A DNA stretch of 64,000 nucleotides from Rebecca billardiae RCC1528. Taxonomy: Eukaryota > Protista > Haptophyta. The translations under genes were made by a program, and so were the position numbers. The stretch spans positions 1,116,001-1,180,000 of the forward strand of contig OZ251227.1 of NCBI GenBank assembly GCA_965240325.2. The letters run 5' to 3'. The number at the start of each line of letters is the position of its first letter. The stretch's first letter is position 1. The notes beneath the pieces are model-generated. The model made no database searches and was not told the DNA's origin. It worked only from the letters and a program-made list of their open reading frames with translations. Below, piece by piece: positions 2,333 to 45,300 of this stretch.

Positions 2333-2386
<54 letters not shown>

Positions 2387-3395: not shown

Positions 3396-3471
<76 letters not shown>

Positions 3472-6074: not shown

Positions 6075-6106
<32 letters not shown>

Positions 6107-6298
6107 TGCTGCGCTGCCGCCGCCGCGGCAGCCGCCGCCGCGCCGCCGCCGCCAGCGCGGCCGCCACCGCCGCCGCCGCCGCCACCGGCGGGGGCCATGG
6201 CGGCGAACGCCGCCGCCGCGGCGGACGACGCTGCGTGCGAGACGCTCGCTGCCGCGCTCGACGAGGAGAACGCCGCGCCAAACGCACAGGCTGAGAGC

Positions 6299-6349
<51 letters not shown>

Positions 6350-7299: not shown

Positions 7300-7453
7300 C
7301 GCGTCCACGCCGTCCGGGAGGTCCCTCGCGAGTCGCGAGTTGAGAGTCGCGGGACTCGCCAGCGCGGCTCGTCCGCCGCCCGGACACGGACCTTGCTGCC
7401 GCCTGCCGCTCGCCAGCTCTCGGCGGCGGCCCGGCCTCGGCGCGGCGGCGCCC
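7300..7453. promoter_or_regulatory. Putative bidirectional promoter between the BEACH and GRIP-golgin genes
   Basis: Only ~154 bp between divergent ATGs at 7299(-) and 7454(+). Confidence 0.45.
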
Positions 7454-10400: not shown

Positions 10401-11024
10401 CGCGCGCGGAGGCGGCGACGGCGCGCGCCGAGCTCGCGCGCACGCGCGACGACGCCGACGCGCTGCGCGACGCGCTCGACGAGGCGCGGCGCGAGGCCTC
10501 CGCCGCGGCCGAGCGCGGCGCGGCCGCGTCGGCCGCGCGCGCGCCGCCCGACGCGGCCGCGGCCGAGGCGGCCGCGGCCGAGCTCGCCGCCGCGCGCGCC
10601 GCGGCGAGCGAGGCGGCGGCGGCGCTCGCCGAGGCGCGCGCGCGCGCGCTCGGCGCCGAGGCCGAGGCGACGGGCGCGCGCACCCTCGCCTCCACGCTGC
10701 AGGAGACGCTCGGCGCCGTGAGCGGCGCGCACGCCTCTTCCCTCGGAGCGCTGCACGACCGGCTGATCAGCGCGACGCGCGAGGCGGCCGCGGTCGAGCC
10801 GCTGAGGCGCGAGGGCGAGCACTCGCGCGCGGAGCGCGACGCGGCGCTGGCGCGGCTGGCGGTCGAGCCCGACGTGCTCCGCCTCGCGCTGCGCGACGCG
10901 GAGAGCGCGCTGGGCACCGCCGTCCGCGAGCTGCGCTCCGAGCTCCGCGCCGCCAAGGCTCGCTCGCGCGAGCTGCTCGTCGCCCGAGACGCGGAGCTGC
11001 ACCGGCTGCGCGCGGCCGCGCAGC

Positions 11025-11056
<32 letters not shown>

Positions 11057-11638
11057 GAGTCGAGGCGGGCGAGCGAGGCGGCGGCCGTGGCAGCCGCCGA
11101 CGCCGACGCGGCGGCGCCCGAGTCAGGCGGCGGCGGCGCCGACACGGCGGCGCGCGCGAACGGCGGCGCGCCGCCGCCGCCCGCGACGCCCGCCACCGCC
11201 GCGCGCGCCTCAGCAGAGGGCGACCCCGAGCGCACGGCGGCGGCCGCGGCCGCGGCGCAGTCGGCGGAGTCGACGCCCGCGCCGCGCGCGAGCGCCGCCG
11301 GCGCGGACGGCGGCGCGCTCGCCGCGTCCCTCGAGCTGCAGCGCAAGCAGGAGCAGATCGCGCAGCTCGAGCACAAGCTGCTGCGCTCGTCTGAGCTCAA
11401 GCGGCGCGCGGCGGTGCGCATCGCCGCGCTCGACTCGCAGCTCGCGCGCGCGAACAACATCAAGAACCTGGAGTACATCAAGAACGTGCTGGTCAAGATG
11501 CTGCTGCTCGGCGACGAGGGCGTCGAGTCGCTCCTGCCCGTGATCGCCCACTTCTTTGCGTTCACGCAGGACGAGCTGCGCCAGATCGAGGCGGCGCGGC
11601 GCGAGCGCGCGCGCCAGAGCTGGCTGCCCGTGCTGTGA
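7454..11638 (+). CDS. GRIP-domain golgin (long Ala/Glu/Arg coiled coil)
   Basis: Starts MDFSAFKLDSLGDKLG at ATG 7454; probable in-frame intron ~7515/7524-7664; long coiled coil; C-terminal GRIP motif NLEYIKNVLVKMLLLGDEGVESLLPVIAHFFAFTQDE; stop 11638. Confidence 0.88.
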
Positions 11639-12152
11639 CGAAGTTCGGGTCACGCAGCCGTACTGAGACTTTGACAACGATGAATTGCGATGTATGATGG
11701 TGGCTTGATACTATGGCCCGTGCGAGCGCTCGACGTGCAAGGCGGGGGAGGATCCGGCCCCAGGTAGCACGATCATGTCGACGCGCCGCGCGTGGCCTCC
11801 AAACGCGTCGACTTTGGCCCCCGTTCGACCTGCACGCGAGACGACGAGGGCAGCAATCGTGAATCGGGCGAAAACACTCTTCGGTAATCCTCGCGCGATG
11901 TCCGCGCCGGCGTTGGATTTGGCGCGCGCGGCCCACGCGCTCCGCGCCACCGGGTACTGTCTTTTCGGCCGAGCGTCCCCAGAATTCAGGGAGCTGCGAG
12001 GGCGCCCGGTAGTGAGCGACGCGATTTTCTTTTCTTGGCGAGTCGATTTTCTTTTTCCTTTTCTTTTCTTATCTTTTCCCCGGGCACTGTCAATCTCGCC
12101 TGCCTAGTGCCTGAGCTGTGTGCGTCAGTCTTATTCTTAGTAAACTGTACAA

Positions 12153-13894: not shown

Positions 13895-15345
13895 TATCAC
13901 CGATTTCGGGCAACCGTGCTCATAAAGTCTGATTGTGTGACTTCAGATTGGAAAGTCAAGTCGAACCGACTTCGACTTCCAAAGCTTCTGTCGAATCCCA
14001 AAGCGAAGTGAGCTTGCGGTTTGCGTTCCACTTTGGAAGTCGAAGCGGAACACGTGTCAAAGCGGTGACCCCTCTTCTGAGAAGCTGGCTTCACACGTTG
14101 GGAGCACTTTGCCCAATCGGGTTCGCTTGTGCGGCGGCGGCGGCGGTGGCGGCGGCGAGGGCTTCTCCGGCGGCGGGGCGCGCACGGGGCACGGCGCGGC
14201 GGGAGCGGATGTGCTCGCACAGCCGGCGCGTGTGGACGGGCTGTTGTGGAAGTGCACGTGGCGCCCTCCTGCGCCGCGCGTCTTGCGCCACGCCTCTCTC
14301 GCCGCGGCTCAGGGCAGCGCGCATGCGCGCGCCGCCTCAAGGCCAGCCTAGTGCCGCGCCGCAGCCGACCGCGCGCGCGCCGTGCGCGGCGTGGCCGGGA
14401 AGGAACGGGCGCGGCTGCCGGGCGAGATGGCGACGCCATACGCGCACGCCATGCCGCCCCGCGACGCCGCGAAAGGGCACAATAACGGATCCACACAGCT
14501 GTTGACGAGTTGGCTGACCACTAGTCGTAACAAGCCAGACCTGAGCTCGAAGAAGATGATGATGAACGATCATCAGCGCGAGAAAAGCGTCGCATGGCGC
14601 ACCTTCTACATGGCCGTATGGTGATAGACACGCATGCACGCACAGCACTTGTGCCCGTCTGGCACCGTTCTGCGTCTCAATGATCGTCCCGATAAGGGTC
14701 ACGACCGCGAGGCCGTGCACGCCATTTGTGACCAGCCGAAGAGGCATGCAAACGGACCGACGACACGGTCGTCAAGGCGTGGCGGGGCGGCATGGGGAGC
14801 ACACGTGGGGTCGCCATCTCGCCCGGCAGCCGCGCCCGTTCCTTCCCGGCCACGCCGCGCACGGCGCGCGCGCGGTCGGCTGCGGCGCGGCAAGGCTGGC
14901 CTTGAGGCGGCGCGCGCATGCGCGCTGCCCTGAGCCGCGGCGAGAGAGGCATGGCGCAAGACGCGCTGCGCAGGAGGGCGCCATGTGCACTTCCACAACA
15001 GCCCGTCCGCACGCGCCGGCTGTGCGAGCACATCCGCTCCCGCCGCGCCGTGCCCCGTGCGCGCCCCGCCGCCGGAGAAGCCCTCGCCGCCGCCGCCGCC
15101 CGCTGACCAACTCGACCCTGTACTTTGGCTTCGCTTCGGAACGACTTTGCCACTCCGAGCCGTCAAGTTTGCGAAGCGGTACCGAAGCGAGACCCGTTCG
15201 CAAAGGACGTTCGACTTCATAGGACCGAAGGTGTTCTGAACTAGGAGCTGGCTTCCGAACACACTTCCGAAGAGGGGATGAAGTTGAAGTCTCACTTCAG
15301 CTTGAGAATCACTTTGATGAGCACGGTTGCCCGAAATCGGTTATA
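13895..15345. mobile_element. Non-autonomous foldback/MITE-like DNA transposon (~1.45 kb)
   Basis: 25-bp perfect TIR ACCGATTTCGGGCAACCGTGCTCAT at 13899-13923 and 15317-15341, with TA just outside on both sides (13895-96, 15344-45); internal ~300-330-bp inverted repeat at ~14140-14469/14775-15100. Confidence 0.75.
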
Positions 15346-15352
15346 AAGTCAT

Positions 15353-15841
15353 GGGAATCCTCCGGAAGTCCGACGAGGACCGACCGAGCAACCAGAACTC
15401 CGACAAACCTCCGCATCTCAGCACGGCGATTTCCGGACTGGCACCCCCGCCAGTTTTCCGACGGCCAGAAGCTTCGGGAGCGAGCAAATGGCGCCGCTCG
15501 CCCGCAACGCGGAAGATACCGCTCGCGGCGAACCGGCGCGAACGCCCGCCTTGTATTCGGGCGGAGTACCCTAATGAGCGGGGGTGGGCACTTTCGTATT
15601 GCGCGCAGCCTGACGCCCACCCGCGACGAAACGACGCCGTCGACTCCTCCCGCCCGGACCGCCGCCGGAACGTTGCTCGTCAATTAGTTAGAGAAATGCG
15701 ACGCCGGGGGGCGCGCCGCAAAACTTGCTCCCGAGCTCGCCACGAGGGAGGGCTGGGCGTGAGCACGACGTTAAGGGGGTACGCCTTCCACGCGCGCGGG
15801 CGTCGTGCGCGCGCCGCGCGGTCGCGCGCGGCGCATCGCGC
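15353..15841 (+). repeat. Left TIR of the MULE
   Basis: Reverse complement of 32630-33118 apart from a few substitutions and one short diverged patch (~15751-15763). Confidence 0.95.
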
Positions 15842-18800
15842 ACACGCACCGACCGTTCTTGTTCCCTGCGGCCTCCCCTCGCAGGAGTTCCCCCTTCTCG
15901 CATCCGAGTCGGTCTGAGGCGTCGACGGTCGCCGGCCGCGACGAGCAGGCAAGTCGCACTCGTGATTCGTGAATGGTGCGAGGTCGCGGTGGGCCGGGGC
16001 GGGTGTGTGTGGTCGGCAGCGATGTTGGTGGCGTGCGCCGCCGCGCGCGCGCACACCGCACCACTCCCATGCGCCCCCGTCCCCTGTCTGACGATGTGCC
16101 CCGTGTGTGTGCTCGCGCGCGCCTGCGTTTGCCTCTCCGCCGCACGTGCTGGCACGTACCGCGCAGGCGGGCATGCGGCATGTGTCCGCCGGCCCCAGCA
16201 GTCAGGACGACCTGCTGCTCGTGGACGCGGTGATCGCAGCGGCTGACGACGCGTTGTGCACGCTGCAGTTCTCCTCGGCAGCAGCCCCGTGGACGTTCAC
16301 CTTTGGTCTGGTGCTGTGCACCCTCGGCGTGGTCCACAGCACCGACGTGGGCCTTGGCGCCGCCGCCGCGCAGGTCACAGTGCCGCGCGTATGGGGTGGC
16401 AGCGGCGCCGACGCGCTGCTCACTGTGGTGGAGTGTGCGGAGTTGTTGGCTTCGCACCCGGACGCGCTGCGTGAGCGCGCGGACTCGGTGGCGCGCGTGT
16501 GCGCGGCGGCCCTTTGGTTCAGGGCCGTCGCGCAGATCGCCGTGCGCGCTGCCTGTGGTGCTTCCGCCGACGGGGCTCTGGCGGAGGAGGGCAGTTTCGC
16601 GGAGACGGCGCGACTGACGGCGTCCGCAGCGGCGCTCGGAGGGAAACCGGCGCCGCCGCCCGCAGGCACGTCCCACGCGCGCCGCTCGGGTGGCGCGGAG
16701 TCGCTGTCGCCGTCGTCCTCGGCGCCGACCCCAGGGCAGCACGCACGCGCCGCTGAGCACGCGCAGGGCGCATGCGCGTGGGCAGTGCGTGCGGCCTGGG
16801 CCGCCGCTCCGTTCCGGACGAAGCTGGCTCTGGCGGCGTTGTGCGCCCCCCGTCCGGATGCCCGCCCAGGTGCTGGGACTGGCGGAGGCGTCGACGACGT
16901 GCTCCCGGCGACGACGGCGGCGGCGGCGGCGCCGTCGGGCGCTTGGACGGGCGCGCCCCCCCCGTGCCCGCCGCTGTCATGCCCGTCCGAGGCGGTGATG
17001 TACTACGCGCGCGCCGTCTTCGGCGCGGACGCTGGCCAGTCCGAGCCTCTGTTCGTCGCCTTCGAGCGCGTGGCGTCGTGGCCAGCAGGCCGCAGCAGCC
17101 TCTGCGCGGACGCGCTGCGTGCGCGAGCGGCGGAGCTGCGCACGCAGGCGTACGCTGCCGTACGCGCGCTCTGCGCGCCCGTGCCGGCGCAGCCGCGCGC
17201 GTTCGTTCCCGCGTCGGCTGAGCAGGCACGCTGGCGCGACCAGCAGCTGCGTGCGGAACTCGAGAGCGCCCGCTTGGCGTGGCTCGGCGCCGTCTCGCAG
17301 GCCGTCGTGGGGGCCGGCGAAGGGGTGGCGGCAGATGGAGCGCCGCGCGCTGCCACGTCCGGCGCCGCCGCTGGACGTGACGCCGCCGTGCGCGCAGCCG
17401 CCGTCAGGCTGCGTGCTGCCGTGGTCGCCGACGGCCACGCCGGTCTTGCGGCCTTTGTGGCCGCGTGCGAGGACGGCTCGCTGCGCGAAGGGTGGCTGGC
17501 GCGGCCGTTGCTGCGGGCCGCCTCCACCATCGCCGAGCGCACCGTGTGGGCAGTGGTCATCCCGCTCGCGCCCGCGCTGGTGCACGTCGGCGAGGGCGCG
17601 CGTCTGCACCCCTTGCTCGACGCCACCTTCGCGCAGGCCCTCGTGGCCGGCGCGGCCGTCTCGCAGCCGCCAGTGACGCTGGTGCTGACGCTGTGCGGTG
17701 CGCACGCTGTCGTGGGCGCCGCTGCGCCGTGGCGCGACGAGGTGACGAGCGCGGCGTCGGGCGCGATGCGCCCTGCCTCCGCCGTGGTGGTGCCGCGCGC
17801 GCTGCCGCCTGCAGGCGAGCCGCCGCTGGGCGACGCGCTGGCGCCGACGCCTGCGGCGGCGCCCGCGCCCAGCCTCGACGACATGCTCGCGCATAACACC
17901 GCGGTTGGGCGCGCGCTGCAGGCCGCGTTTGGTGCCGCCGCTGCGGCACCGCAGCGTTTGGACATGGACATGGGCGTGCTGGTTGGCCCGTTGCGCGAGT
18001 ACGTGCTGCAGCACGCAGGCCTCGGCGGGGACGGCGATGCGTCCATGCCCTTGCTGGATGAGGGTGGCGGCCTCCTGCGCACGGTGCACGCGTACCAGTC
18101 CGCGGACGCGGGCGGCGAGGCGGCCGCGCAGCGGCGCTGGGGGGTGGGCGACCACGGCTCCTCTGCGCGCTCGGTGCTGGGGTGCCGCGCCTTTGAGCGC
18201 GTGGTGGCGGCGCTGAAGGGCGTCGTGAGCTCGTTGTTCCGCGGCGACGCCTCTGACGGTGTCCGCGGCCTCGACGCGCTCGACCTCACGGCCTGGCATG
18301 TCTTCGGGCGGCCGATGCGTCCGCCCGACGGGGGCCGCGGCACGTGCGACGACGGCGACGTCACGACGTACGGGTGGCACGTCGACGGCACGACCGACGA
18401 GGACCATCTGTGGACGGCAGTGGTCCTCTTGCACTTGCCGCAAAGTGTGCCCACCAATCCCTTCCCGCTGCAGACGGTCGGCGCGCGCCCCCCCGGTGCG
18501 CGCGCCGACGCCGTGCCGCTGCACGGCGACGTTGCCCTGCAGGAAAGCGCAGGTGCAGTGCACATCTTCCCCGCCATGTGGCATCACCGCTCGGCCCCCA
18601 GTGCGCGCGCCGCGTCCTCGGGGTCCGTGCCGTCGTCCTCGCGCAAGAGGCCTACGCGTCAGGGTGCGGCGGACGCGCTCGTCCTGAAGGCTGTGTTCTC
18701 ATTCGGGGGGCGGGGCCTCGCGGACACATTCCGCGCTTCGTTCACGCCGCCGCCGAGCGCGCCTCGCCCCGCCGCCACGCCGTGCGCGGCGCGCTCCGAC

Positions 18801-21800
18801 CCGCCTCCCACGCCGTATCGGCTCGTGCCCGCCCTCGAGCGCGGGCTCCAGCACTCGTTTGAGACCAGGCTGCGCTGGGGGGCTGAGCCCACGCGCGCTG
18901 GCGCTGACGCCCGCTTCCGGCTCGGCTCGCCTGCGCACCACGAGTACGTCTCCCGCCTGGTGGTCGACCTGCCGACCGCGGCGCACGGCCAGCAGGCGCC
19001 GTCGGACCACGAGCAGCGGGCCTGGGCGCAGTCGGCGCTGCAGCTGGCGCTGCCCGTGTGCGCTGCCGACGGCGCGCAGCTCGCACATGAGCGCGCAGCG
19101 GCGCCTGCCGTGCCCCACGTCGTGGGGCTTGCGGGCGGCCACCCCGCGCCTCACGCCGACGGCGGTGGGCGCGCGCCCACCGCCGCGGCCGCGCACGGCA
19201 CGGGCGCGCACGTGGGCGCCCCCTTTGACGAGGGCGCGCGGCCCCCACGCGCCGATGGCGTTGACGACCCGGCTGTCGGGCCGCGCGCGCCCACGGCCGT
19301 GCGTCGCCCCGACGCAGCGTCCGCCCCGCTGCGGCACACCGGCGCCCGCCAAAGCTCGAGCTCGGACGCGCCGGGCGCGCACGAGCCCGCGTCGCCGCGG
19401 CCTGGCGATGGGCACTCTTCGCCCGCTCGCGTGGCAACGCCAGCGCCGGGCGCACCCTGCGCTGCGGGCGACGCCGTGCCCTGCGTCGCGGTGACGGTGC
19501 CCGGCGCTGCTGTGTGCGCCGCGACGGCGCGCCCGCCACTCCACCCGGCGGGGCCGCCCCTCGACAGCAGCAGCGCGCGCGCGGTGATCGCGCAGCCGCC
19601 CGGCTGCGCCTCGCGCGCGCCGCCGCAGCCGCGCGGCGCCTCCGGTGGCGACGGCGGCAATGACGACGACGACGCGCGGCTGAGGGCCCTCCCTGCGCTG
19701 CCGCACGCAGGTGGCCTCTTGTCCGGCGGGGACCTCGCCCTGGCCCTGCACGCCGGCCAGCGTGCCCACCTCGGTGGCCACCTTGCCGACGCGTTGGCGA
19801 CGGAGAAGTCGGCGCCCGCATGGGCGCGCGGTGGAGTGCCCCTCGTCGACGCGTCCGTGGGCCATAGGACGCACACGACGGCGGCCGCCCGCGGCAACGC
19901 GCCGCTGTTCGCCCTGAGCGCGGACTGGCCGACGATGCGCGTCGGCGAGTCCGACGCCCGCGGCGAGCCGCTCGTCACGGACGCCGATCCCGCCAGTGCC
20001 GCCATCGACGTGCGCGACTGGGAGGAGGGCATCGCGGACGACGACTGCGCGGACGCCCGCGCGCGCGCGGCGCAGGCGGCACTGCAGGCGGACGAGTCCG
20101 CCGACAGCGACGCCGCTCGCGCGCGCGACCCGCTGGCTGCCCTCATGCCGTGTCCACCCATCGTCGCTCGCGCGCAGCCGCCCTCCACCGGTCCCGCCGA
20201 GCCCCGCGCCGGCCAGGCCGGCGCCCGGCTTGTTGCGCCGGAGTCGCTGCACCACGGCGGTGACGCCGGGTACTTCCGCTACTCCGCGCCGTCGAGCACC
20301 TCGGCGAGCACGTCGGCGGCAGCGCACCGCCTCGAGCTCCGGCCCCTGGCACTGTGGAGGAAAATGGGCTTGCGGGCGCCGCGCCCGTACTCCCAGGTGA
20401 AGGCGGACGCCACCCTGCTCGAGCCCCCGATGGTGCGCCAGGTGTACCCGCGCCTCGCCGACGCGCTCACGCACGCCTCGGAGTGCGCGCTGCACCGGGG
20501 GGCCATGCCGCCGACGCGGCGCGTCGACCGCGCCAAGCTGACGATCGGATGCCCCACGCCCGGGTGCCCGTCCGTGGTGGTGGTGGGCCCGTCGAAGTAC
20601 GTGGACACGTTTGGCGCGCCGCCGTGGGCCGTGCAACGCTCGGTCGCGCACGGCTCCATGTGCCGCAACCTGCGCATGGGCAAGGGGTCCGAGGAACACC
20701 CCATCGGCTCGCTGCCGCGCCCGACCAACCAGCCGGGCGTGCGCACGACGCCGTACTCCCAACACGAGCTCGGGCGGGCGATCGTCGAGGACTGGAAGGC
20801 GCGCTTGGCCCGGCGCGGGACCACGCACGCGCAGCTGTGCTACGGCCCGCAGCAAGCACGAGAGGTCGCGCGCCAGCTGGACGCAGAGCTCCCCATGGGT
20901 GAATCGCTCATCGCGCGAGCGCACAAAGAAGCGCGCGCCGAGATCTACGGGGACGACACGGCCATGTCGCGCGACCTCGTGGCCGTGTGCGCGTCGCTGT
21001 CGCAGGAGGGCAACGAGGTCGCGCCCATCATCTTCCACGAGAACTCGGTCGAGGACGCGCTGCTGGCCATGTTCGGCCGCGTGCACGACGAGGTGCAGCA
21101 GGGGCTGCCGGCGGGCGCGCAGCGCGCGGCCTTCAACCCCGACGCGGCGGAGGTGCAGAAGGCGCTGGCTGACGTGCGCGGCAAGAAGGCAGTGGGTGGC
21201 TTCCACTACGTGCCCAAGCAGGCCAAGGCGCTTTACCGCGAGCACTTTCACGCGAAGGGCAACACGGCCGCGTTCAGCGACGCGTGCTTCCTGCACCGCC
21301 CCGCCAGCGGTGGCGCGAAGCGCGCGGGTGCGCGCGCCCGCCGCACCCGGGCACGCCCTCGCGACGCCGCGTGCGTCCGTGCCGCCTCAGCGCCCGCCCG
21401 TCTGACCTGCCCGCGCGCACGCACGCGCGCGACGCAGGCATGCTCTTCGTCACGCTGGCCGTGAACGCCAACCGGCAGCTGTTCGTCTTGTGCGTGTCGT
21501 ACATCGTCGACGTGGAGTGCCTGGACTCGTGGTGCGCGCACGTCGGATACCTCATGCAGCACCTCGGCGGGGCGGCTGTGTGGGACGACCCCAACGGCGT
21601 CACCATCTCGGACGGCCAGAAGGGCCTGCGCGGCGCGTGGAAGCTGCTGTGCCCGCGCAGGCACCTCTTCCTGTGCACGTTCCACAAGCGCCAGACCTTC
21701 ATCACGGGCTACGCACACTCGGCGAACGAGGTGCCCACCATCCTGCGCGTGTTCGACGCGTGCGTGGACGCGTTGACCGAGGAGGTGTGGGAGGCCGCCT

Positions 21801-24800
21801 GGGTGGAGATGCCAGAGTCGGCCAAGCGCATCCTCGACGTCATCCCCCGCGAGGAGCTCTTCCCGTGCTTCGCGCCGGTGTCCCTGCGCGGCTACGTGAC
21901 GTCCGCGCCGGCGGAGTCCTTCATGCACTGGCTGCTGCCGGTGCGCAAGGCGCAGGGCCCGGTGTGGATGCTGCTCGACCTGCACGACAACCTCTTTCGC
22001 CTCTACGCGACGCACCGCAGCGTCGCCGTGCGCCACGCCCTGAAGCCCGACGCCGATGATGAGGTGCACGGGTTGCCGCCACGGCACCTGGAATACGTGC
22101 GCCAGCAGGTGAGCACGGCGCGCACGCTCTCTCAGGTGGAAGTGCACCGTGTCCTCGACGGGCCGCACGCAGGTGCCCTGCGCATGCTCAACACCACGGA
22201 CGGCTCGGCGCCGCGCCACGTGTACCTCGACGAGTTCCGGTGCTGCGCGTTGCTGCGCCGCAAGCGCCTGCCGTGCATGCACTTCTGCCGCGTGGCGACC
22301 TCCGTCGGCCGTGCCATGGGCACGTGCTTGCCCCAGGACCTGCGCTGCGAGACGTGGTTCGCGCAGGTGGGCCTTCGGGTCGAGCGCGACGCACACGACA
22401 CCCGGGTGGACACGCTCGGGCGCGTCGTGGCCATCACCAAGCTCGACGTCATCACACCGCCCCAGCGCCTGGAGGACGCCATTGCGGCTCTGCTGCTGCC
22501 CGCTCTCGCCAAGCGCGCCCTGCTCGAAAAGTACGTGGCCATGCCAGCGGTGCCCGCGCGCGTGGGCAGGCCCGCGTCCTCGGCGCGACGGCTGGCGTTC
22601 TGGGAGGGCCGCGCCGGGGCGCGCCACCCGCGCGCACCGCGCGCGCGCGCGCCGCGCGTGCAGTTGGGCAAATCCGCGGCGTCGTACGTGCGCCCCTTGA
22701 GGGAGCAAGCCCCGGACGGCGACTTCGCCCGGCGCGTGCGCGAAGCGCACCGCGACGAGCTCGCGCGTGTGCTCGAGGGGCTGCCGGAGCACCTGTACGG
22801 CATCGCGCACACGCACGTGCTCGACGACACTAACGTGCTCGTGCGCGTGGCCGGCCCGCTCCGCGAGGGTGTGGTTGCGAACCAGCGACGTCGCCACTTT
22901 GCCACGTACACGGCCGGCACGACCGCCGCCGCGCAACTGCGCTGCTGCGCGTGTTTCGACCCCGAGGCCGCGGACCTCAGCGCGGCGTGGCCGGCGGACT
23001 CGCCGCCGATCGACCCCCGACTGGCGTGCCAGGGCTGCGCCTGCTTCATCCACTCGCCCGCGCAGTGCAAGTATGTGTGGCACCTCGGCGCGCTGGACAG
23101 CGGGCTGTACATGTGCACGTGCTGCTACTTCCTGCTCGTCGCGGGGGCGTGGAAGCGCCTGCGCGAAGCGCGCGCAGCCGCGGCGGGCGAGGCGGCGGCG
23201 CCCGACGGGCCGCGCGGCGCGAGGCCGGAGGACGTGCCATACCACCGTATGCGCGGACAGCACGGCGGTGGGGCCGCGCGCGGCGACCCCGCGCGCACCG
23301 CAGGCGCGCGCGGGGGCCGCGCAGGCGGCCGCGGGGGCCGCGGCGCGGCGGCGCCCGCGCCCGGGCGCGCGCAGCCGGCGGCCGCCCAGACGCGCGACGG
23401 CGCCGCCGCGGCGGGCGCGGGCGCGCGCGGCGGCCCGCGCCGGCACTGCGCGCGCGCGATCGCCTCGCAGGCACTTGGCGGCACCGGCGTACGCATGGGC
23501 TTCGCGACGGCACCGATGCCAAACGCCGCCACGCAGCGGCCGGCCGCACCGCCTGAGGGCACGACGGGCCCGCGCAGTGGCGCGGACGCCGGCACGACGC
23601 CCGCCGCGCGCGCGCGCGCGCACGCCGCGGAGCCGCTGCCGGCCACGGGCGACACAGTACCGCTGGCGGCGACTGAGCATCCCTTCCGCCCCCCGTGGCC
23701 CGGCGCCCACGCGCCACCGCCACCGGGTGCGCGAGTCCCTCGGGCGCGCGCGGGCGCGGCAGAGCCACCGGCGGAGGCGGCGGAGTCCGAGTCGGCGTAC
23801 GCGCGCCTCGCTGACGACAGCGCCGCAGTGCTCGCGGCGTTGCGGCGCATACCTGGCATCGGTCGGGGCAGGGCAGCCATGTTCATGTGCAGTCGCGGCC
23901 TGTCAGCACCGTGGCCCACGCTCAGCGAGACGGCCGGTGACGCATTCGGCGCGTCCAGCGCGACGACGGGCAAGGTGCTGGCACAGTTTGCGCGCGCCGC
24001 CGCCGCCCCCGCCGAGCTGGCGCGCGCGCACGCGTCGCCCGCCGTGCCCGCCGAGGGCAGTGGCGGCGCGAGGGGCTCGGGCGGCGCCGCTCCGAACGCG
24101 GCCTCCCACGTGTGGGCGCACGCAGGCGCACACGACGTCGCGGCGGCGGCGGCGGGCCTGGCGGACGTCCTGGCTGGCGGCGGCGGCGCGGGCGCAGGCG
24201 CCGCAGGCCAGGCGGGCGCCGCGGCTGGCACCTCCCGCGCGGGCGCGGGGGCCGCGTCTGCGCCGTGCGCGCCCAAGCGCCCTCGGACTGCGGCCGCCGC
24301 CGACGACGCGGGCGGTGCGGCCGCGGATGGGCGCCTGCCGCCGGCTTCGCGCCAGGCGGCGGGCGCCCGCGCGTCCACGGCGGGGCCATCGTCGGCGGCG
24401 CGGTCGGTGCCGACGCCGGGCCCAACGCGCGCAGGCGCCGACCTGCTGGGGACGGCGCGTGGCACGTCTGGTGCCGCGGACGACACAGCCGTCGCCACCG
24501 CGGACGACGCGGTCGCCCACTTGGCGCGCACTGGTCTGCCGGTGCGCGACGCTGGAGCGCGCGCCGCGGGCGATGACCGCCACGCGCCGGTGCGCCTGTT
24601 CCACGCCGCCGACGCCGCCGCCGGCGCAGACGACCACGACGCCGAATTCGCCCGATTACGGCTCTGCTGCGCCCAGGCAGTGCTCGACGACCTCTGGGGC
24701 GCGGGCGCCGCACAGCCGTTGCCCGTGCCAGCCGACGGTGACGACGTGCTGCACGCGGTGCTCGCGCACGCGCACGCGCGGGCGCGTCCGCCCAGCACGC

Positions 24801-27079
24801 TTGAGGCCCTGTGGTGGGCGTGCTGCGCGCGGCGCCTGCGCGCGGCGGCCGCGTCGTGGCTGGCCGCGCACGCGCATGCCACGCCCACCGAGCACTCCGT
24901 CGGCTGGGGTGGCGCGCTGGGCCCGGCCGAGTCGGCAGAGGACCTGCGAGCGCAGGCGCGCTTCATCGGCTTGTGCGGCGCTGACGTGCGCGCACTTCCC
25001 CCGGAGAGCGCAGGTGGCGACGAAGCTGGGCAGGCGCGTTTGCGGGCTCTGCGCATGGTGGCCCCCGACGACTCGTCGTCGTGGCACACCCCCGGCCAGG
25101 GCGTGCGCGATCTGGACGACGCAGTGACGCTGGCAGTGCGAGCGGCGGAGTACACGTGCGACGGGTACGTCAGCAGCCCGGGCAACACGTGCGATGGCCC
25201 TGAGTGGTACGCGGCAGTCGCTCGCGCCGCCGGCGTGCACCTCCTCGTCTTCGACATGGCCTACGCACGCCGAGCTCGCGACGTGCACGGCGTCGCCATG
25301 CGTGAGCACGTGCGGTGGTATCCTCCGACGGCAGTGCGCGTGCCGCCGGCGCCGGCGGCGCCACGCGCTCGCGGGGGCGCCGGCGCGAAGCGCCGGCGCG
25401 CCGACACGCCCGACGCAGGCGCCGCGCACGCGGACGCACGTCCGCTGTGCGAAGCGCGCCTGAGCCTGGGACGCGAGACGCACGCACGCGTCCTGCGCAC
25501 GCTCGACGTCGGGGCGATGGGCACCGGCTGGGTGGCCATCGTGCGCAACGTGTGTCCTCGCCGGCAGTTCTACGCAGTGGTTGCGCCGCAGGCCACCCCG
25601 CGCGCGCACGGGGTGTTGCCGGCGTCGCGCTGGAGTGCGTTCCAGCCGGCTGCGGACGCGCACGTGAGGCTGGCGTCCAGGCGGCGCGGGTGCGAGGTGG
25701 ATGCGCTGGACCCGAGCGCGTTCGGCACCGAGGTGGTCCCTCTCGACGGCTCCGACGGGGCATGGCGGTGCGACGTGGGCTTGGGGCTGCGCCTGGCCTT
25801 GGGCGAGACCGCCGCTGACGTGACGGCGGAGCGATGCCGCGCTGACGTGACGGCGGGTGATGCCGCGCCACGCGGCGCAGCCGCGCCGCGCGCCGCGGCG
25901 GCGACGGACGCCACCGTGGACGCGGGTGCGGCGGCGCCGGCGCCCGCCGGGCACGGGGCTGCGCCGGCTGCGGTGGCTCCGGCGGCCGCCGCACACGTGC
26001 ACGCGCCGGTGGACGACGCCGCGGTCCTGCTCGAGCGCCTGGGCTTCCCCGTGCTGCCCCTGCCGCCGGCGTTGCCGCCCGAGGCGCGGGCTGGTGCACA
26101 GACCGGAGCACCCGGCGGCGTGGATGGCGACGGCAACGTCGCCGCGGCCATCCGCGAGCTCTTCGGCGGCGGCACGAGCGTGCAGGACGTTCCCGGCGAT
26201 GGCGACTGCTACTTTCACGCGTGGCTCGCGCACGACACGCGTGGCGTGCGGGCCGACCTGCCCGCCGCCAACGCGCGCGCGCAGACGCTGCGCGACGGCG
26301 TGTGCTCGTACATCGCGTCGTGGGAGGACGAGCACGGACCGGGCGAGACGCTCGGCACGGCGTCGGCCACGGCGTCGGCGGCAAGCGCGCTCGGCATGCT
26401 TGGCGTCAAGCCAGCATCCATCCCCCGGGCCCGCACCGGCCAAGGACTCGAAGTGCAGGACGAGGACTGGCAGGAGGTGCTGCCACTGCCACTGCGACAT
26501 ACTGGAGGCGTGCGGACGCTGGGAGCAGCGGCGCGCGCGTACGCGCGCGGCGCCCGGTACACGGGCGACGGCGCTGGCGCGCATGCGGCGCGCGCTGGTG
26601 CGTGGTCGGCGTGGGGCTCGCACGTCGCGACGGCGCGCGCCACGGGCCTGCCGCTGGTGGTCCTTGAGCTGCGCGGCGGGGCTACGCCGGAGGAGGCGGC
26701 GTGGCGCGCGTTCACCGACAACGTCTGGTTCTACCCCGTGCAGACGCGGCCGGGCCTTCGCTGGCGGCGGACTGACGACGGCGGGCGCAAGGGCAGCGTC
26801 GCCGTGAGCACGCATGCGCACCTGCGCCTGCGTGACGAGCGCACGCGGCGCGCCTTGCAGCGTCTGGACGTCACGCAGTTGGGCACGACGTGGATGGCCG
26901 TGGTGTACGACGGCCGTTGCCACTTCGGCGCGGTGGTGTCGGCGACGGCGCCCCTGGAGGCGCGTTCGGCGCGCGACAACAACGAGGGGCGTCTGGCGCA
27001 CTTCATGCGAGCTACATCACCCTTGCAGGGGTACGTTGAGTGCGCACCACGCCGCCTGAGCACGCCAGGTGCCAGCTAA
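15696..27079 (+). CDS. MULE transposase polyprotein (2OG-Fe(II) dioxygenase + Zn-finger DBD + DDE + SWIM + PHD-like + HhH + 2x OTU), ~3,600 aa
   Basis: Predicted exons 15696-15778, 15885-15948, 16167-21327, 21438-27079, all joining in frame (10,950 nt); alternative start ATG 16173. Intron 21328-21437 joins FSDACFLHRPASGGAKRA^GMLFVTLAVNANRQLF. Also ISDGQKGL...HLFLCTFH, TSAPAESF, SWIM CCALLRRKRLPCMH, DBD CPTPGC...W...HGSMC. Catalytic D 21279, D 21611, E 21914. Confidence 0.88.
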
Positions 27080-30000
27080 CAGAACGACAGGCGCCGACTC
27101 ACGGCACCGGCCGGCCGGCCTGCGTCCGAGCTGACGACGACATAGCACGGGCCGGCACAGTGTGGGCCCCCGGCGGCGTGTATCAGTGTTGTCGCGCGTG
27201 GCGCTGCTTGCATCCCGCTAAGACCTGCGCTAAGACCTTCTCGGCGGGCCCCGCCGTAGGCCCTTGTGGCGCCGTCACTGCGAGTGGCGCAGAGGCGCTG
27301 GCCGGGGGGGTGCCTGTGGCCGTGTGCTCGGAGAACCGGGCTCAGGCCACGGCGATTCCGACGAGCCACTCCGCCGGCACCCCGGGTGCCGAGCTCGTGG
27401 CCAGATGCTGCCAGCGGTGGCGGCCACCCGCGTGGCCGCCCCGGGTGGCGCGCAGCCTGTGCACGCCACCGCGACGCGCGCGCGCGCACGGGGGCGGTCG
27501 GGCGCGACTGAGCCAGGGCTGCGCGTACACGCCGCTCGGCGTGCGCACGGCTGGCGCCGCCCGATGTGGTGTGTGCGCGCACCTGTGGGCGGCGCGTGGG
27601 CACGTCAGGACGCGCCCTTGTGGGTCGGCGTCTACTGCGCGGCCGGCGGGGGCTGGCCCGCGGGGGCTTCGTCGGCCTGCGCGGCCGGCGCACGGAGCGA
27701 CAGTGCAGCGGCCTGGCGGGCACACGCGAGTCAGGGGGCGGCACTCGGCGCCGCGCGCGCTGGCCGAATGCGACCGGCGGCGGCGCGCCACGCCGTGCCG
27801 TGGGTGCGCGCGACGTGGGCGCAGCGGACGCAGCGCTCACCGACGGGCCCGCAGCCGGGGCGTGCGCGCCGTGCGGTGCTTCGCCTGTTGGCAGCTGGAC
27901 GCACGCCGCGTGCGCCGACGCGTGCGGGCCGGGCTGTGCGCCACCTGCGCTGCGGTCCATCATGAACTGCGTCAACGCCTGCATAGACGCCACCATCGCG
28001 CTCGCGATCTCGTCACGTTTCATTGCGGCCGCGCGATCCTCGTCGCGTCGGCGCGCCGCCTCCGCGCGCTCCTGCTGGCGCCAGGCCTCGTCCGCCGCGC
28101 GCTCCTGCCGGCGCCGCTCGTCGTCCGCCGCGCGCCAGGCCTCGTAGTCCTTCTGGCGCTTGGCGTCGTTCGCAGCGAGTTGTCCGATCGCTTGTGCCAT
28201 TGCGTTGGGGATGCCGTGCACCATCTCAGCGAGCTGGGCGTGGGCCGCAGCGAGCTCGGTGCACATGCGCGTCGCCTGTTCGGGTGGCCCGGGTGCGCGC
28301 GCGACGGCGGATGGCCGTGTGACGGCGACGCGGCCCGGGTCGCCGACCGGCCGGCGCGCCACCACACGCCCACCGGCGGCGCCGCCCGCGCCGCCCGCGT
28401 CGGCGCCGCGTTCGTTCAGGCGACGCTTGCGCGCTGGCGCCGCCTGTACGTGCCGCGCCAGCGAGGGCGCGCGCCTGTGGAGCGCGGCGGCGTACATCTT
28501 CGGCGCGTCCACGCCGCTGCTTTTGCCGGTGACTGGGTCCGCCGGGTGCGTCCAGAGCCGATCCTGGCAGAACGGGACGATGTCAGCCCACACGCTGATG
28601 CACAAGGGGCGAAAGTCCACAATCGCACCCACGGGCGGCGCGGCAGGTGGCGTCCCGGCAGGCGGCGGGCGCGCCAGGGCGGCTGCCTTCACGGGGTCGC
28701 GCATGTGCGGGACGAAGAACAGCGTGCCGAAGTTGCCGGCGTCGGCGTCGTCGCCGGCCGCCGCGCGGCTGTGCGTTGACAGCGCCTCCGTCGACTTCCA
28801 CGAGCGCGTCTTCGAAGGCACGTAGGTGAACTCGAGCACCTCGTCCCGGTGGAGTGCCCGCGAGCTCGTGTCGGCGTTGAGCACGCGGTCGTAAGCACCG
28901 GCGTTATCCTCGGAGACGGCGAGGAGCTCGAAGGTGAGCCGCTTCTTCCGCTCGGGCGCGACGAGCCGTGCGCTGACGATGCGCACCTTGGTGAGGTAGT
29001 CCGCCGCCTCGAAGGACGCACCATCGCCCACGCTGACGTCGGCGAGGGCGTCGTATCGCAGGTGTGCCGCCTTGACGCGCAGCACGAGCGCCGAGGCGCA
29101 CGCGATGGCCGCCGCGACGCACGTGTGCTTCGAGGCGAGCATCAGCTCTTGTTCATGGACGGGCAGCTCGCCGACGACGCCTGCGACGCGCACGCGCGTC
29201 CCACCGCCCGGCCGGGGGAGAGGCCTGTCAAACGAGCGCTGCGGGCGGCCGGCGACCATGATCTGGTGGAGCGTGTGCAGCAGGTCCGCCGACGCCGCCG
29301 TGCCCCCAATCACGTCGTAGTTCGACTGCACGTACGTGAGCGCCGCCTCCGCGATGGCCGCGGCGTTCGTCATGAGCCCGGGCGGGTCGCCATCGGGCGC
29401 CCAATGGCATGGCCCGATGCCGAGCGCGCTGCACACCGCGGAGGCGCCCATGAGCACGTCCGTGGACGTCGGGACCACGTCCCGGCGCGGGCGGGGCGGC
29501 AACGCGTCCGTCTCGTCCGGGCTGGGCGGCGAGTCGTGGAGCGCGGGGGCGGCGTGCTGGACGGGGGGCGCAATGGCCCGCGGCGGCGCTGACTGCAGCT
29601 CGCACGCAGCAACCTCACGCCGGCTGACGGCGGCGGCGAAGGCGTCGACCGTGAGGTCCGTGCACGTCGCAGCCGTCATCGCGCCCGCCGCACCACTGGG
29701 CGGCCGCGTGGCGAAGGTGAGGAGGCGCCAGCCCTTCTCGAAGCGGATGGCGTACGCGTGCGCGCCGACGACGGGCTCCGACTCGTCGGTGTCGTCGGTG
29801 TCCACGGACCGGTAGTCCACCACGGCCACGGCGGCGTGCAGCAAAGGCGACGTCCCCTGCTCAGCGGGCGCCCGCAGCGGCGTGGGCACAAGCGCGCACC
29901 AGGAGGGCGCCTGTGCAACCACGGCGGGGAGGCCGAACACCGCCTGTCCCGAGCGCCGCATCGAGGGCAACGCAAGCGCCCGGTGAACCCAGGGCGCGTC

Positions 30001-32775
30001 GCCGCCTGCGACGCCATCGTCGTCGGCCTCAGCGTCCGCTAAGGCGACTCGCACGTCCGCGTCGAGGACGTAGGGCAACGGGCCGTGCACACCGAAGTGC
30101 TCGCCTGCTGCGCGCAGGGCGAGCTCAGAGACAGAGCCGCCGACGCTCGCGGCGGCGCCGGCGTAGAACTCGCGCACCGCATCGTCCACCTCGCTGCGCG
30201 TGTACATGGCGCCCGAGGCGCACAGCTCGCGCACAGCGTCGGCATCCGTGAGCACGCCGAAGTGCTTGTTGTTCGTGGCATCGCACACCACGTTCACCAC
30301 GCGGACCGTGCCGCCGCCGCCGCCGAGATGCCGTGACGCGAACGCGCGGTTGAACCTGAGGATGGCCGGCACCAATCGGCCGTTGTTCGGTTGCGGCCCG
30401 TGCTTCGTCGTCCGCGCGTCCGCATCCGCCACCGCGCTGGGGCGCACCAGCACGTGCGCGTGCGCCTGCGCCGGCGCGGCGGGCGTGTCTCCGCCGAACC
30501 TCCGGCGTTTCCCGTAGATGCCGCTGAAGAAATGATCCACGTGCTGCAAGACATCGCTCATCGCGAACAGCTCGCGTGAGCCGCCGTCGCCGCTGCCGTA
30601 GACGCCGCCGCCGTCGTCAGCGTGGCCGCCACCGCCGGGTTGCGCGGCGGCGGGCGCCTGCTGTGGTGCATGGGAGTGCGACCCCGCTGCGCCAGCCGCC
30701 GCTCCACCCATCGACGCCGTCGCCGCCCGTGCCACCTCGCCCGAGGCAGCACCACCGGAGTCATCTGAGTTGACGCCCGCGGGGCCGTCGGCGGCCGCAG
30801 CCGGCGCCGGCGGCGCCGGCGCCGCCGCGGTGACGCCGGTGGCAGCCGCCCGCGCCTCGGCGGGTGCGCGTGGCGGCTCGGCGCGTTCGGCGCGCGTCGC
30901 GGTCGACGCCGTCGCCGCCCGTGCCACCTCGCCCGAGGCAGCACCACCGGCGTCATCTGAGTTGACGCCCGCGGGGCCGTCGGCGGCCGCAGCCGGCGCC
31001 GGCGGCGCCGGCGCCGCCGCGGTGACGCCGGTGGCAGCCGCCGGCGCCTCGGCGGGTGCGCGTGGCGGCTCGGCGCGTTCGGCGCGCGTCGCGGGGCCGC
31101 CGGCGGCCGCAGGCGGCGGCGCCGGCGCCGCCGCGGTGACGCCGGTGGCACCCGCCAGCGTTTCGACGGGTGCGCGTGGCGGCTCGGCGCGTTCGTCGCT
31201 TGTCGCGGGGCCGCCGGCGGCCGAAGGCGGCGCCGCCGGCGCCGCCGTGACGCCGGCGACCGCCGTCGGCGCCGGCGGCGGCGGCGGCGCCGGCGCCAGC
31301 GTTGCGACGGGTGCGCGTGGCGGCTCGGCGCGTTCGTCGCTTGTCGCGGGGCCGCCGGCGGCCGCAGGCGGCGCCGCCGGCGCCGCCGTGACGCCTGCGA
31401 CCGCCGTCGGCGCCGACGGCGGCGCCGGCGCCGAGGTGACGCCGGGCAGCGCTTCGGCGGGTGGCGCAAGTGGCGGCTGGCGGCGCATGGCCCGCGTCCG
31501 CACGCCGCCGCGCCCGTTGTGGTGAGCCGCCCCCTGCGCGCCGCGCTGCCCCGCAGCCTCCTGCTGGATGCCCTGGGCGGCGTAGCTGCCGCCGCCCACG
31601 CGCGTGCTGCCGTGGCGGGCCGGCCGGCCGTCGGCGCCCTGCTCGGCGCCCTGCTCGGCGCCCGGCTGGGCGCCCTGCTCGGCGCCCTGCTCGGCGCCCG
31701 GCTCGGTGCCCTGCTCGGCGGCCTGCTTGCCATGCCCGGCGCCCGGCTGGGCGCCCTGCTCGGCGCCCTGCTCGGCGCCCTGCTCGGCGCCCTGCTTGCC
31801 CTGCTCGGCGCCCGGCCCGGCGCCCGGCCCGGCGCCCTGCCCGGCGCCCGGCTGGGCGCCCTGCTCGGCGCCCTGCTCGGCGCCCGGCTCGGCGCCCTGC
31901 TCGGCGGCCTGCTTGCCCTGCTCGGCGCCCGGCTCGGCGCCCGGCCCGGCGCCCGGCTGGGCGCCCTGCTTGCCCTGCTCGGCGCCCTGCTCGGCGCCCG
32001 GCTCGGCGCCCTGCTCGGCGGCCTGCTTGCCCTGCCCGGCGCCCTGCCCGGCGCCCGGCTGGGCGCCCTGCTCGGCGCCCTGCTCGGCGCCCGGCTCGGC
32101 GCCCGGCTCGGCGCCCTGCTCGGCGGCCTGCTTGCCCTGCTCGGCGCCCGGCTCGGCGCCGAGCAGGGCGCCGAGCAGGGCGCCCTGCTCGGCGCCCTGC
32201 TCGGCGCCCTGCCCCTGCTCGGCGCACTGCTCGCCGGCGGGCGGCGCACGCACGTGCGCCGCTGGCACCCTCTTCAACGAGCCTGCGCCCTCGACTGTTC
32301 CATCCGCGGACGCACCGACGGTGTCGCCAGGGACCGCAGCCCACGCATGAGCAGACACTCCCTCGGCAGCCCGGAGGACGTACGTCTGCACTCGCCCGTG
32401 TGCGCCGACCCCAAGCGCCGCGACCACAGCACGGACTGCCGGTGCACCCTGCTCGTACACCACGTCCACAGCAGCCCCGTTCGCGAAGCTCGTCGCAGTC
32501 GGAGTCGTCCCCGCAGGCGGCGGCGGCCTGCGCGCGGCACGCGGGCACGACGCCGCGCAACGACGCAGAACGCACGGCGTGACGACATGCGCGAGCGCAC
32601 GCCGCGCGCGCGAACGAAGACACACGCGCGCGCGATGCGCCGCGCGCGACCACGCGGCGCGCGCACGACGCCCGCGCGCGTGGCAGGCGTACCCCCTTAA
32701 CGTCGTGCGAGGCATCGATCGTCCCTCGTGGCGAGCTCGGGAGCAAGTTTTGCGGCGCGCCCCCCGGCGTCGCAT
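27076..32775 (-). CDS. Second (accessory) MULE gene, ~1,800 aa, unknown function; Tudor-like N-terminus, peptide repeats, C-terminal coiled coil
   Basis: Uninterrupted 1,899-codon ORF starting inside the right TIR (ATG 32775 or 32715); probable in-frame introns 32692-32528 and 27582-27457; protein-like globular segments and coiled coil ([36 protein letters not shown]). Confidence 0.75.
30711..31440. repeat. Coding tandem duplications (192-bp x2 and 141-bp x2) in the accessory gene
   Basis: Segment starting at 30711 recurs at 30903; segment at ~31165 recurs at ~31306; both periods are multiples of 3. Confidence 0.85.
31630..32225. repeat. 12-bp coding minisatellite (GGCGCC + 6-nt cassette) encoding ([12 protein letters not shown])n
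   Basis: About 50 units such as GGCGCCCTGCTC and GGCGCCCGGCTC. Confidence 0.92.
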
Positions 32776-33118
32776 TTCTCTAACTAATTGACGAGCAACG
32801 TTCCGGCGGCGGTCCGGGCGGGAGGAGTCGACGGCGTCGTTTCGTCGCGGGTGGGCGTCAGGCTGCGCGCAATACGAAAGTACCCACCCCCGCTCATTAG
32901 GGTACTCCGCCCGAATACAAGGCGGGCGTTCGCGCCGGTTCGCCGCGAGCGGTATCTTCCGCGTTGCGGGCGAGCGGCGCCATTTGCTCGCTCCCGAAGC
33001 TTCTGGCCGTCGGAAAACTGGCGGGGGTGCCAGTCCGGAAATCGCCGTGCTGAGATGCGGAGGTTTGTCGGAGTTCTGGTTGCTCGGTCGGTCCTCGTCG
33101 GACTTCCGGGGTTTTCCC
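32630..33118 (-). repeat. Right TIR of the MULE
   Basis: Inverted copy of 15353-15841, ending ...GACTTCCGGGGTTTTCCC. Confidence 0.95.
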
Positions 33119-33200
33119 TATAAAATTAAATCACATTTTGACTTTTCGTCTGCGCTTTTGACTTTCCACGCCGCGTGTTTCGAGCGGGCCGCTGACCGAA

Positions 33201-44600: not shown

Positions 44601-45300
44601 GATGGTGCCATGGCGGGCGGCGGCTGTCGACGCAGCTGTCAGCTCGGCGGTGCACGCCCGAGGGGCGTGGGCGCTGGAGGCACCGAACGCGGTGACGCTG
44701 CTCGCCTCGCCCATGGCGCTGGAGCCGCTGCCATCCGGTGCTGCTGCGCCCGCGCCCAGCCGTGGCAGCAGTAGCAGCGCTCGACTCCGCGCCGCGTGCG
44801 GCAGCAGCAGCAGGGATGGTGCCATGGCGGGCGGCGGCTGTCGACGCAGCTGTCAGCTCGACGGTGCACGCCCGAGGGGCGTGGGCGGTGGGCGCACCGA
44901 ACGCGGTGCCGCTGCTCGCCTCGCCCATGGCACTGGAGCCGCTGCCATCCGACGCTGCTGCGCCGGCGCCCAGCTTGGGCAGCAGCGGCAGCGCTCGACT
45001 CCGCGCCGCGTGCGGCGGCAGCAGCAGGGATGGTGCCACGGCGGGCGGCCGCAGCAGCTGAAAGCTTGGCAGTGCCCACCCGAGAGGCGTGGGCGCTGGA
45101 CGCACCGAGCGTGGTGTCGCCGCTCGCCTCGTTCCGTAGCGCGCTCGAGCCTCTGCCATTCGATGCCGCTGCGCCCGCGCCACGGCGCCGCTGCACGGCT
45201 GCAGCTGGCAGCAGCTGCGCTCAGGAGGCTTCGCGCCGCATGCGGTGGTAGCAGCAGGGAGGTGCCACAGCCAGGCCGGCGGCGGTGGTCGGGCGGTGCT
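41700..45300 (+). repeat. 214-bp tandem repeat array (about 16-17 units, degenerate at the edges)
   Basis: Identical ORF-track motifs recur at multiples of 214 bp (42384, 43026, 43240, 43882, 44310, 44738). Confidence 0.93.

Follow-up and report, generated by a model that had tools for sequence, protein, structure and literature searches.

We analysed a stretch of 64,000 nucleotides from the haptophyte Rebecca billardiae RCC1528 (assembly GCA_965240325.2, contig OZ251227.1, positions 1,116,001 to 1,180,000), hereafter the window. Our subject is a candidate oxygenase domain of prolyl-hydroxylase type, which lies in the reading frame of the transposase of a large transposable element, apparently of Mutator type. 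The element is 17.8 kb long and lies between two 397-nt terminal inverted repeats (TIRs), the left one on the plus strand (15353..15749) and the right one on the minus strand (32722..33118), and thus starts at 15353 and ends at 33118. The repeat search and an ungapped comparison showed that the two arms are 99% complementary, with identity from GGGAA on. With near-identical TIRs and stop-free coding frames the element is apparently intact, and the 99% TIR identity makes it look young, or recently inserted. Three mismatches separate the two TIRs within their outermost 15 nt (GGGAATCCTCCGG vs GGGAAAACCCCGG). A clean target-site duplication of 8–11 bp was not found in the flanks at 15339-15352 and 33119-33130. 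Both flanks share only the hexamer TATAAA, the left copy of which is 5 nt (GTCAT) away from the GGGAA terminus.

The GC content of the window ranges from 57 to 88% across 2-kb bins. Because such GC-rich DNA yields stop-free frames on both strands, a stop-free open reading frame (ORF) alone is weak evidence for a gene here. The first long coding stretch of the transposase (16107..21309, plus strand) belongs to the stop-free ORF 16107-21464, whose first in-frame ATG is at 16173. In this frame the GC content at third codon positions (GC3) was 0.83–0.96, compared to 0.55–0.65 at second positions (GC2), and this periodicity was constant from 16107 to ~21200. Since GC3 far exceeds GC2 throughout, this is the real coding frame. 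The part that concerns us most is no exception, with a GC content of 0.73/0.55/0.90 at codon positions 1/2/3 in 18207-18506. The antisense ORFs of more than 500 aa that overlap the transposase frame lack such a coding periodicity and are by-products of a GC content of 77%.

Besides an N-terminal extension, the oxygenase-like island and a zinc-finger region, the first coding stretch contains FSDACFLH (21273-21296, plus strand), the first catalytic-Asp block, which stands in the same stop-free frame as the island. It is followed by a predicted GT-AG intron of 128 nt in phase 1 (21310..21437, plus strand), read directly from the sequence, with the GT donor at 21310 and the AG at 21436-21437. The GC3 frame switches at this point, where the predicted intron connects the reading frames of ORFs 16107-21464 and 21284-27079. 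The predicted splice would join ...FSDACFLHRPAS (ending ...FLHRPAS) to G-MLFVTLAVNAN, and the intron would separate the FSDACFLH block from GMLFVTLAVNAN. The second coding stretch (21438..27076, plus strand) contains the putative catalytic core and a CxC...CxH-like block seen as a sequence motif at 22271-22294; its long tail carries an OTU-like motif. Joined, the two exons would encode a transposase of ~3,600 residues.

The best, and essentially the sole, Pfam match of this transposase was PF10551 (Mutator-like element, MULE) at 21440-21685, which covered 80 of the 99 profile positions and scored 17.1 bits (E = 0.0077), below the Pfam cut-off of 27.6 bits. A CX4C...HX3C block at 20547..20663 (plus strand), found by sequence pattern only and without a match in Pfam, is the likely zinc-chelating DNA-binding region of the transposase. 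It may be a finger of the WRKY-GCM1 type, since MULE transposases are described as binding DNA through zinc-chelating fingers (PMC1702500). Relatives of the transposase core were not found among JGI metagenome contigs, nor were relatives of ORF residues 1350-1785 in a word-indexed protein search. A previous reading of this DNA, made from the letters alone and called the sequence-only reading below, had proposed a 2-oxoglutarate (2OG)/Fe(II) dioxygenase domain fused upstream of a MULE transposase. Fusion to a transposase of Mutator type is supported by our results, namely the 397-nt TIRs with 99% complementarity, PF10551 as best Pfam match below threshold, and the predicted intron. At the DNA level, the oxygenase-like motif indeed shares one uninterrupted frame with the DNA-binding region of the transposase, as this frame is stop-free from 16107 to 21309.

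The N-terminal extension of the transposase is 1,400 residues long, and in most of its 60-residue windows Ala, Gly, Pro, Arg and Ser together make up 55–73% of the residues. Residues 691-810 (18177-18540) form an island within it, with a fraction of only 0.32–0.35 for these five residues and an entropy of 3.65–3.68, the highest value outside the transposase proper. Because this is a globular-type composition within a low-complexity extension, residues 691-810 fit a folded domain. The candidate double-stranded beta-helix (DSBH) domain, resembling 2OG/Fe(II) oxygenases, is indicated by the composition island, the ESM-Atlas feature search, the hhalign comparisons and a six-frame scan. It covers approximately ORF residues 694-866 (18186..18704, plus strand).

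Translation of 17901-18800 in the frame of ORF 16107-21464 reproduced all strings quoted in the sequence-only reading and, together with the GC3 periodicity, places them and the HxD at 18378-18386 in the true coding frame. From the N-terminal side, and all on the plus strand, the candidate domain contains LTAWHVF (18282-18308), then YGWHVDG (18369..18389), then LWTAVVLLHL (18408-18437). YGWHVDG combines a family-type Tyr with an HxD metal-ligand motif (His at 18378-18380, Asp at 18384-18386). Further downstream is a distal-His block, AGAVHIFPAMWHHRSAP (18555..18599), with a pair of His residues at 18582-18587. This pair is carried by GAVHIFPAMWHHRS and lies in WHHRS at 18579-18593. The distance from the HxD to the distal-His block, Gly...Phe-Pro...His-His-Arg-x-x-Pro, is 66 residues, and both motifs stand in the order, spacing and register of the family. 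Deletion analysis and an extended alignment marked off a 25-residue insert rich in Ser, Ala, Arg and Pro (18600..18674), for which the predicted local distance difference test (pLDDT) was below 50 in both AlphaFold models described below. The insert separates the distal-His block from a last strand-like segment, LVLKAVFSF (18678..18704), with a Lys at 18687-18689, which was not placed by hhalign.

The family to which this domain might belong was suggested by language-model features. The ESM-Atlas feature search with the 218-aa domain gave PF13640 as best cluster (score 0.93), a diatom set annotated as 'prolyl 4-hydroxylase alpha subunit Fe(2+) 2OG dioxygenase', and 20 of the 30 matches fell within the PF13640 family set, including a giant-virus PF13640 cluster. 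When only the C-terminal 122 aa were searched, which lack the HxD, all clusters returned were still of 2OG-Fe(II) oxygenases (PF13759/PF13640, score 0.86). Convergence of two Atlas searches on one clan among thousands of families is unlikely by chance. The scores themselves are leads, since according to the tool notes a score of at least 0.9 is reached by 4–10% of shuffled proteins and a score of at least 0.8 by about one third.

Profile comparisons pointed in the same direction. As a seed for protein searches, Escherichia coli YbiX, which is annotated as a PKHD-type hydroxylase, gave solely orthologues of at least 80% identity, and the profiles were therefore built from annotated phage genes and IMG/VR loci. 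Profile 1 (n = 15) consists of YbiX, two YbiX orthologues and twelve cyanophage and pelagiphage genes annotated as 2OG-Fe(II) oxygenases, which were found by tblastn with YbiX; its invariant columns are Y..H.D, GG.L, G, H, G.R and W. Profile 2 (n = 25) consists mostly of IMG/VR loci and YbiX orthologues, and shares the YbiX orthologues and near-identical phage proteins with profile 1. Comparison by hhalign of the candidate with profile 1 gave a score of 29.2 (P = 8.3e-4, probability 24%). In this alignment TYGWHVDG fell on the Y..H.D columns and AGAVHIFPAMWHHRSAP was matched to aG..v.yP....HrV.PV of the family; the invariant His was paired with the second His of WHH. Profile 2, which has the family consensus Y.WHvD, aligned in the same register (P = 2.3e-3). 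The distal-His block scored 21.9 against a phage-only profile (P = 0.015).

Two controls were made for these scores. Composition-preserving shuffles of the domain (n = 300) scored 12.4 ± 2.2 (mean ± standard deviation) against profile 1, with a maximum of 20.3, so that the real score is 7.6 standard deviations higher. A six-frame scan of the window covered all 122 stop-free stretches with a length of 218 aa or more, divided into 288 windows with a total of 58,572 residues. The candidate ranked first and second (29.6 and 26.5), followed by a next best score of 21.7 and a median of 10.1. The hhalign result is not independent of how the site was selected, because the site was first picked by the very HxD motif that is aligned.

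Another kind of comparison was dropped as evidence. In a MAFFT alignment with 24 family members, the candidate kept six invariant columns (Y, H, D, P, G, H). Of the 16 conserved columns, an average of 7 were kept by shuffled domains and 5.6 by natural windows that are unrelated, compared to 6 for the real sequence. The number of retained invariant columns is therefore worthless, because shuffled sequences added by MAFFT retain as many. More generally, 'invariant residues retained' by an outlier sequence in a MAFFT family alignment should not count as evidence.

Structure prediction from the single sequence with AlphaFold gave a mean pLDDT of 33, which is uninformative either way. We therefore also consider a family-guided model, for which the candidate and 24 PF13640-type sequences were supplied as the alignment. 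Such a model can refute a fold; it cannot confirm one, because the alignment imposes the fold and the reasoning would be circular. In this model the pLDDT was 78–82 around the two motif blocks, and strands were predicted for WTAVVLL, LQTV, VHIFP, HHRS and VLKAVFS. The VLKAVFS strand (model residues 194-200, pLDDT ~51–54) was formed although the alignment put no last strand of the family there. The top 50 PDB matches of the model in Foldseek were nearly all named 2OG oxygenases, mainly PHD1/2 and the prolyl 4-hydroxylase (P4H) of Pseudomonas putida, plus a Shewanella 'putative oxygenase', with E-values of 0.09–0.5 and template modelling (TM) scores of ~0.3. The family-guided model is thus not incompatible with a DSBH fold; it neither refutes nor confirms it.

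Our preferred interpretation is that 18186-18704 encodes a DSBH domain that is genuine, highly divergent and of P4H/PKHD type, that is, of the branch of the cupin clan that resembles 2OG-FeII_Oxy_3. We put the probability of this interpretation at roughly 0.55. The assignment to the prolyl-hydroxylase/PKHD type rather than to TET/JBP, already made in the sequence-only reading, agrees with the PF13640 and PF13759 neighbours in the Atlas and with the hhalign results for the PF13640-type profiles. The broader claim of that reading, a 2OG-Fe(II) dioxygenase domain, stands only in part. It is supported by the Atlas matches and the hhalign register, and it found neither a match to a curated hidden Markov model (HMM) nor a confident DSBH model.

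Several results weigh against a DSBH domain. Searches of Pfam with hmmscan, using four cuts of the segment and maximum E-values of 1–10, returned no family, and NCBIfam and PHROGs returned nothing relevant at E ≤ 10. Comparison by phmmer with all PDB sequences gave just two chance matches, TEF14 and a galectin (E ~0.17–0.18), and when 1.84 billion representative proteins were searched exhaustively with phmmer, none matched at E ≤ 0.001. A word-indexed protein search and searches of JGI metagenome contigs, IMG/VR, phage genomes and the window itself revealed no relative of the domain either. Hence, the element is an orphan at the sequence level in the public collections searched. The hhalign signal depends largely on one motif. 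A window that contained only TYGWHVDG, which is identical to TYGFHVDG of YbiX at 7 of 8 positions, still scored 26.5–27.6, so that ~27 of the 29 hhalign units come from eight residues. Deletion of the distal-His block lowered the score by only ~2.5 units. The part after the HxD matched the correct block best, yet with a score of 13.8 and a P of 0.17, where shuffles scored 11.0 ± 2.0. Over 288 windows, the hhalign P corresponds to ~0.2 expected chance matches; extrapolation of the empirical tail gives ~0.04. The hhalign evidence therefore amounts to one strong short motif and a weak, correctly placed second motif. The family-guided model had a mean pLDDT of only 55.8 and a predicted TM score of 0.47. 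In a structure search independent of Foldseek its neighbours, which were PHD2, P. putida P4H, the collagen prolyl hydroxylase vCPH of PBCV-1, PiuC and other cupin-type folds, had Z-scores of 5–6, under the noise bar of the tool of ~8. Finally, the candidate lacks three features of the family: the near-invariant GGEL turn, the G-x-R at +8/+10 past the His, and the next Trp.

These results might be explained by a chance resemblance. The extension would then be fast-evolving and either largely disordered or of a novel fold, YGWHVDG and the later His would be coincidental, and there would be neither a jelly-roll nor an oxygenase. Such an explanation accounts for the blank HMM libraries and sequence databases, for the eight residues that carry most of the hhalign signal, for the expected number of window-wide chance matches, and for AlphaFold showing no confidence in the single sequence. 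It is also helped by the permissive nature of HxD...H, at a site that was chosen by eye from 64 kb, by flexible aligners that fit shuffled sequences to conserved columns equally well, and by Atlas scores of 0.86–0.93 being within reach of shuffled proteins. A mere coincidence is harder to reconcile with two different methods picking one family out of thousands, and with the half without the HxD landing in the same clan. Furthermore, the motif blocks are collinear with the family at a similar spacing (66 vs 62 residues), the score is far above the shuffles and also well above those of 286 natural GC-rich control windows, and the segment is a distinct island of globular composition. We therefore regard chance resemblance as somewhat unlikely. 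If the motif is a chance one, our results would serve as a caution that HxD...H patterns in GC-rich ORFs are easily over-read.

If the DSBH domain is real, its ability to bind 2OG deserves separate consideration. In oxygenases of the PF13640 type the C5 carboxylate of 2OG is bound by a basic residue, an Arg or rarely a Lys, on the last core strand, ~9–10 residues after the distal His. The column of the family Arg (+10) holds a Ser in the candidate, which has an Arg at +7 after the aligned His (18606-18608). The Lys at 18687-18689 lies 34–35 residues past the His pair, behind the 25-residue insert. The sequence-only reading had proposed this Lys in place of the usual Arg. None of our alignments placed it there, and removal of the insert in silico neither raised the hhalign score nor brought the Lys into alignment. 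On the sequence, replacement of the Arg by a Lys as 2OG anchor is possible. Alternatively, 2OG binding may have decayed and the domain may be catalytically weakened.

In the latter case, a captured gene of the P4H/PKHD type would have lost 2OG binding and would now serve as a structural or binding module, or have no function at all. This would be consistent with the Ser/Ala-rich stretch that takes the place of the near-invariant G-x-R...W strand, with the missing GGEL turn, and with the position of the 25-residue insert, exactly where the 2OG-anchoring strand should come. Set against this, the metal triad is intact, as are the Tyr, Pro and Gly that flank it, the frame shows a strong coding periodicity, the element looks young, and the strand-like LVLKAVFSF with its Lys after the insert could replace the Arg strand. 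Decay to a non-catalytic domain seems very unlikely to us.

A base oxidase of the TET/JBP or AlkB kind, acting on 5-methylcytosine or N6-methyladenine at the element against methylation-based silencing, has a precedent in the TET/JBP genes carried by fungal DNA transposons (PMC12730594) and shares HxD...H, which is common to all these families; yet Pfam reports no similarity to PF12851 (TET/JBP) or PF13532 (AlkB), the Atlas neighbours are all PF13640/PF13759 and none TET/JBP or AlkB, and Y-x-W-H-V-D is the signature of P4H/PKHD-type profiles, so that the probability of this explanation, to which none of our results points, is close to negligible.

Under the preferred reading of a P4H/PKHD-type domain, we can outline how it might work. 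With Fe(II) bound by His 18378, Asp 18384 and His 18585, the domain would decarboxylate 2OG to succinate and hydroxylate a substrate through a ferryl intermediate. The transposition complex would thereby receive a modifying enzyme that the element itself supplies. Because the enzymes characterised in the nearest family, of PF13640 type, hydroxylate proteins, a protein side chain is ranked above a nucleic-acid base as the possible substrate. It might belong to the transposase or to a chromatin or translation factor of the host. The substrates suggested in the sequence-only reading, methylated bases such as 5-methylcytosine and N6-methyladenine or chromatin proteins, are conjectural. We infer every step beyond the presence of the motif. 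An active Fe(II)/2OG enzyme of prolyl-hydroxylase type within a DDE transposase, which would modify a protein (or nucleic acid) where transposition takes place, is in our view clearly unlikely. If true, it might disarm a host silencing factor, or tie transposition to the oxygen or 2OG state of the cell.

Compared to PF13640 proteins, the candidate shows several likenesses. TYGWHVDG corresponds to TYGFHVDG of YbiX and is followed by a hydrophobic strand that contains Ser or Thr and by a Pro. Next comes a block of Gly...(F/Y)-P...His-Arg-x-x-Pro, with a ligand spacing close to the 62 residues of YbiX, and PF13640 is the nearest family by language-model features. In contrast to these proteins, the candidate is below every curated threshold, with no Pfam match at E ≤ 10, and has neither the GGEL turn nor the G-x-R anchor at +8/+10 nor the Trp that comes next. 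A 14-residue insert precedes its HxD, and the low-complexity insert of 25 residues follows its distal His. Moreover, members of the family are free-standing proteins of ~200 residues, whereas the candidate is part of a transposase of ~3,600 residues.

Plant MULEs are known to carry ULP-like proteases. Our element resembles MuDR/Mutator elements with accessory functions in its long TIRs and its extra protein function, which in known cases is aimed at chromatin or silencing. It differs from them in the unusually large size of the element (17.8 kb) and of its transposase. Among MuDR-type elements, the anti-silencing protein VANC of VANDAL elements and a SET histone methyltransferase of a Phytophthora MuDR are known (PMC12730594).

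Fungi offer another parallel. There, the Kyakuja, Dileera, Zisupton, hAT, Harbinger, IS3EU, EnSpm, ESTA, Plavaka and Helitron elements carry TET/JBP genes, whose presumed role is to counteract silencing by methylation (PMC12730594). Both cases would combine a 2OG/Fe(II) dioxygenase with a cut-and-paste DNA transposon, and an anti-silencing rationale is plausible. However, our candidate is P4H/PKHD-like, is found in a GC-rich alga and lies in the reading frame of the transposase, and MuDR/Mutator is not among the lineages listed in PMC12730594.

A full-text search of an incomplete literature collection returned no report of a 2OG oxygenase domain in a Mutator element. To our knowledge, a fusion with an oxygenase of prolyl-hydroxylase type has not been described for any transposase. 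Transposons with enzymes that act on epigenetic marks form a known but short list (TET/JBP in several DNA-transposon lineages of fungi, SET domains in MuDR and Harbinger elements of oomycetes, VANC in plant VANDALs). If real, the candidate domain would be a variant of the known theme of a transposon-borne modifying enzyme, and no new kind of system. It would add a new enzyme class, a prolyl-hydroxylase-type oxygenase in a Mutator transposase, and, with a haptophyte-like alga of very high GC content, a new group of hosts. It would also offer a testable handle on the persistence of giant, apparently recently inserted elements.

The C-terminal tail of the transposase (24500-27076, 859 residues) contains the OTU-like motif DGDCYFHA at 26198-26221. 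Pfam gave no family for this tail at E ≤ 10; its divergence, as in the oxygenase-like island, is too great for curated HMMs. The element also holds a second long ORF of 1899 aa, which is convergent with the transposase (27076..32775, minus strand). It was taken from the ORF listing, and its GC periodicity fits the minus strand. A long run of periodic repeats of 12 nt (and 9 nt) occupies ~31531-32100 of this ORF, and a repeat of ~140 nt is present in four copies at 30847-31433.

Public reads on the stretch came from one low-depth DNA run with contigs of 200–400 nt, and no RNA run contains the stretch. In the public DNA run X1, 20 short contigs matched 16100-21999. Seven of these were less than 95% identical, including four below 90%, which suggests that diverged copies of the element are present in the sequenced sample. 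Variants listed from the public run are at 18922, 20951, 21036 and 21667-21696, and none falls inside the oxygenase-like segment.

Two further features of the window lie outside the element. At 1-12000 the GC content is 78–88%, with very long coding-like frames rich in trinucleotides of the GCC/GCG type. An example is ORF 7004-11638, which encodes 1544 aa with Ala/Glu/Arg-rich repeats. This region was used as control sequence. At 40126-50005 there is a large foldback with arms of 1470 nt that are 100% complementary (40126-41595 and 48536-50005), and these arms flank two opposed 214-nt satellite arrays (42232-45099 and 46234-48243).

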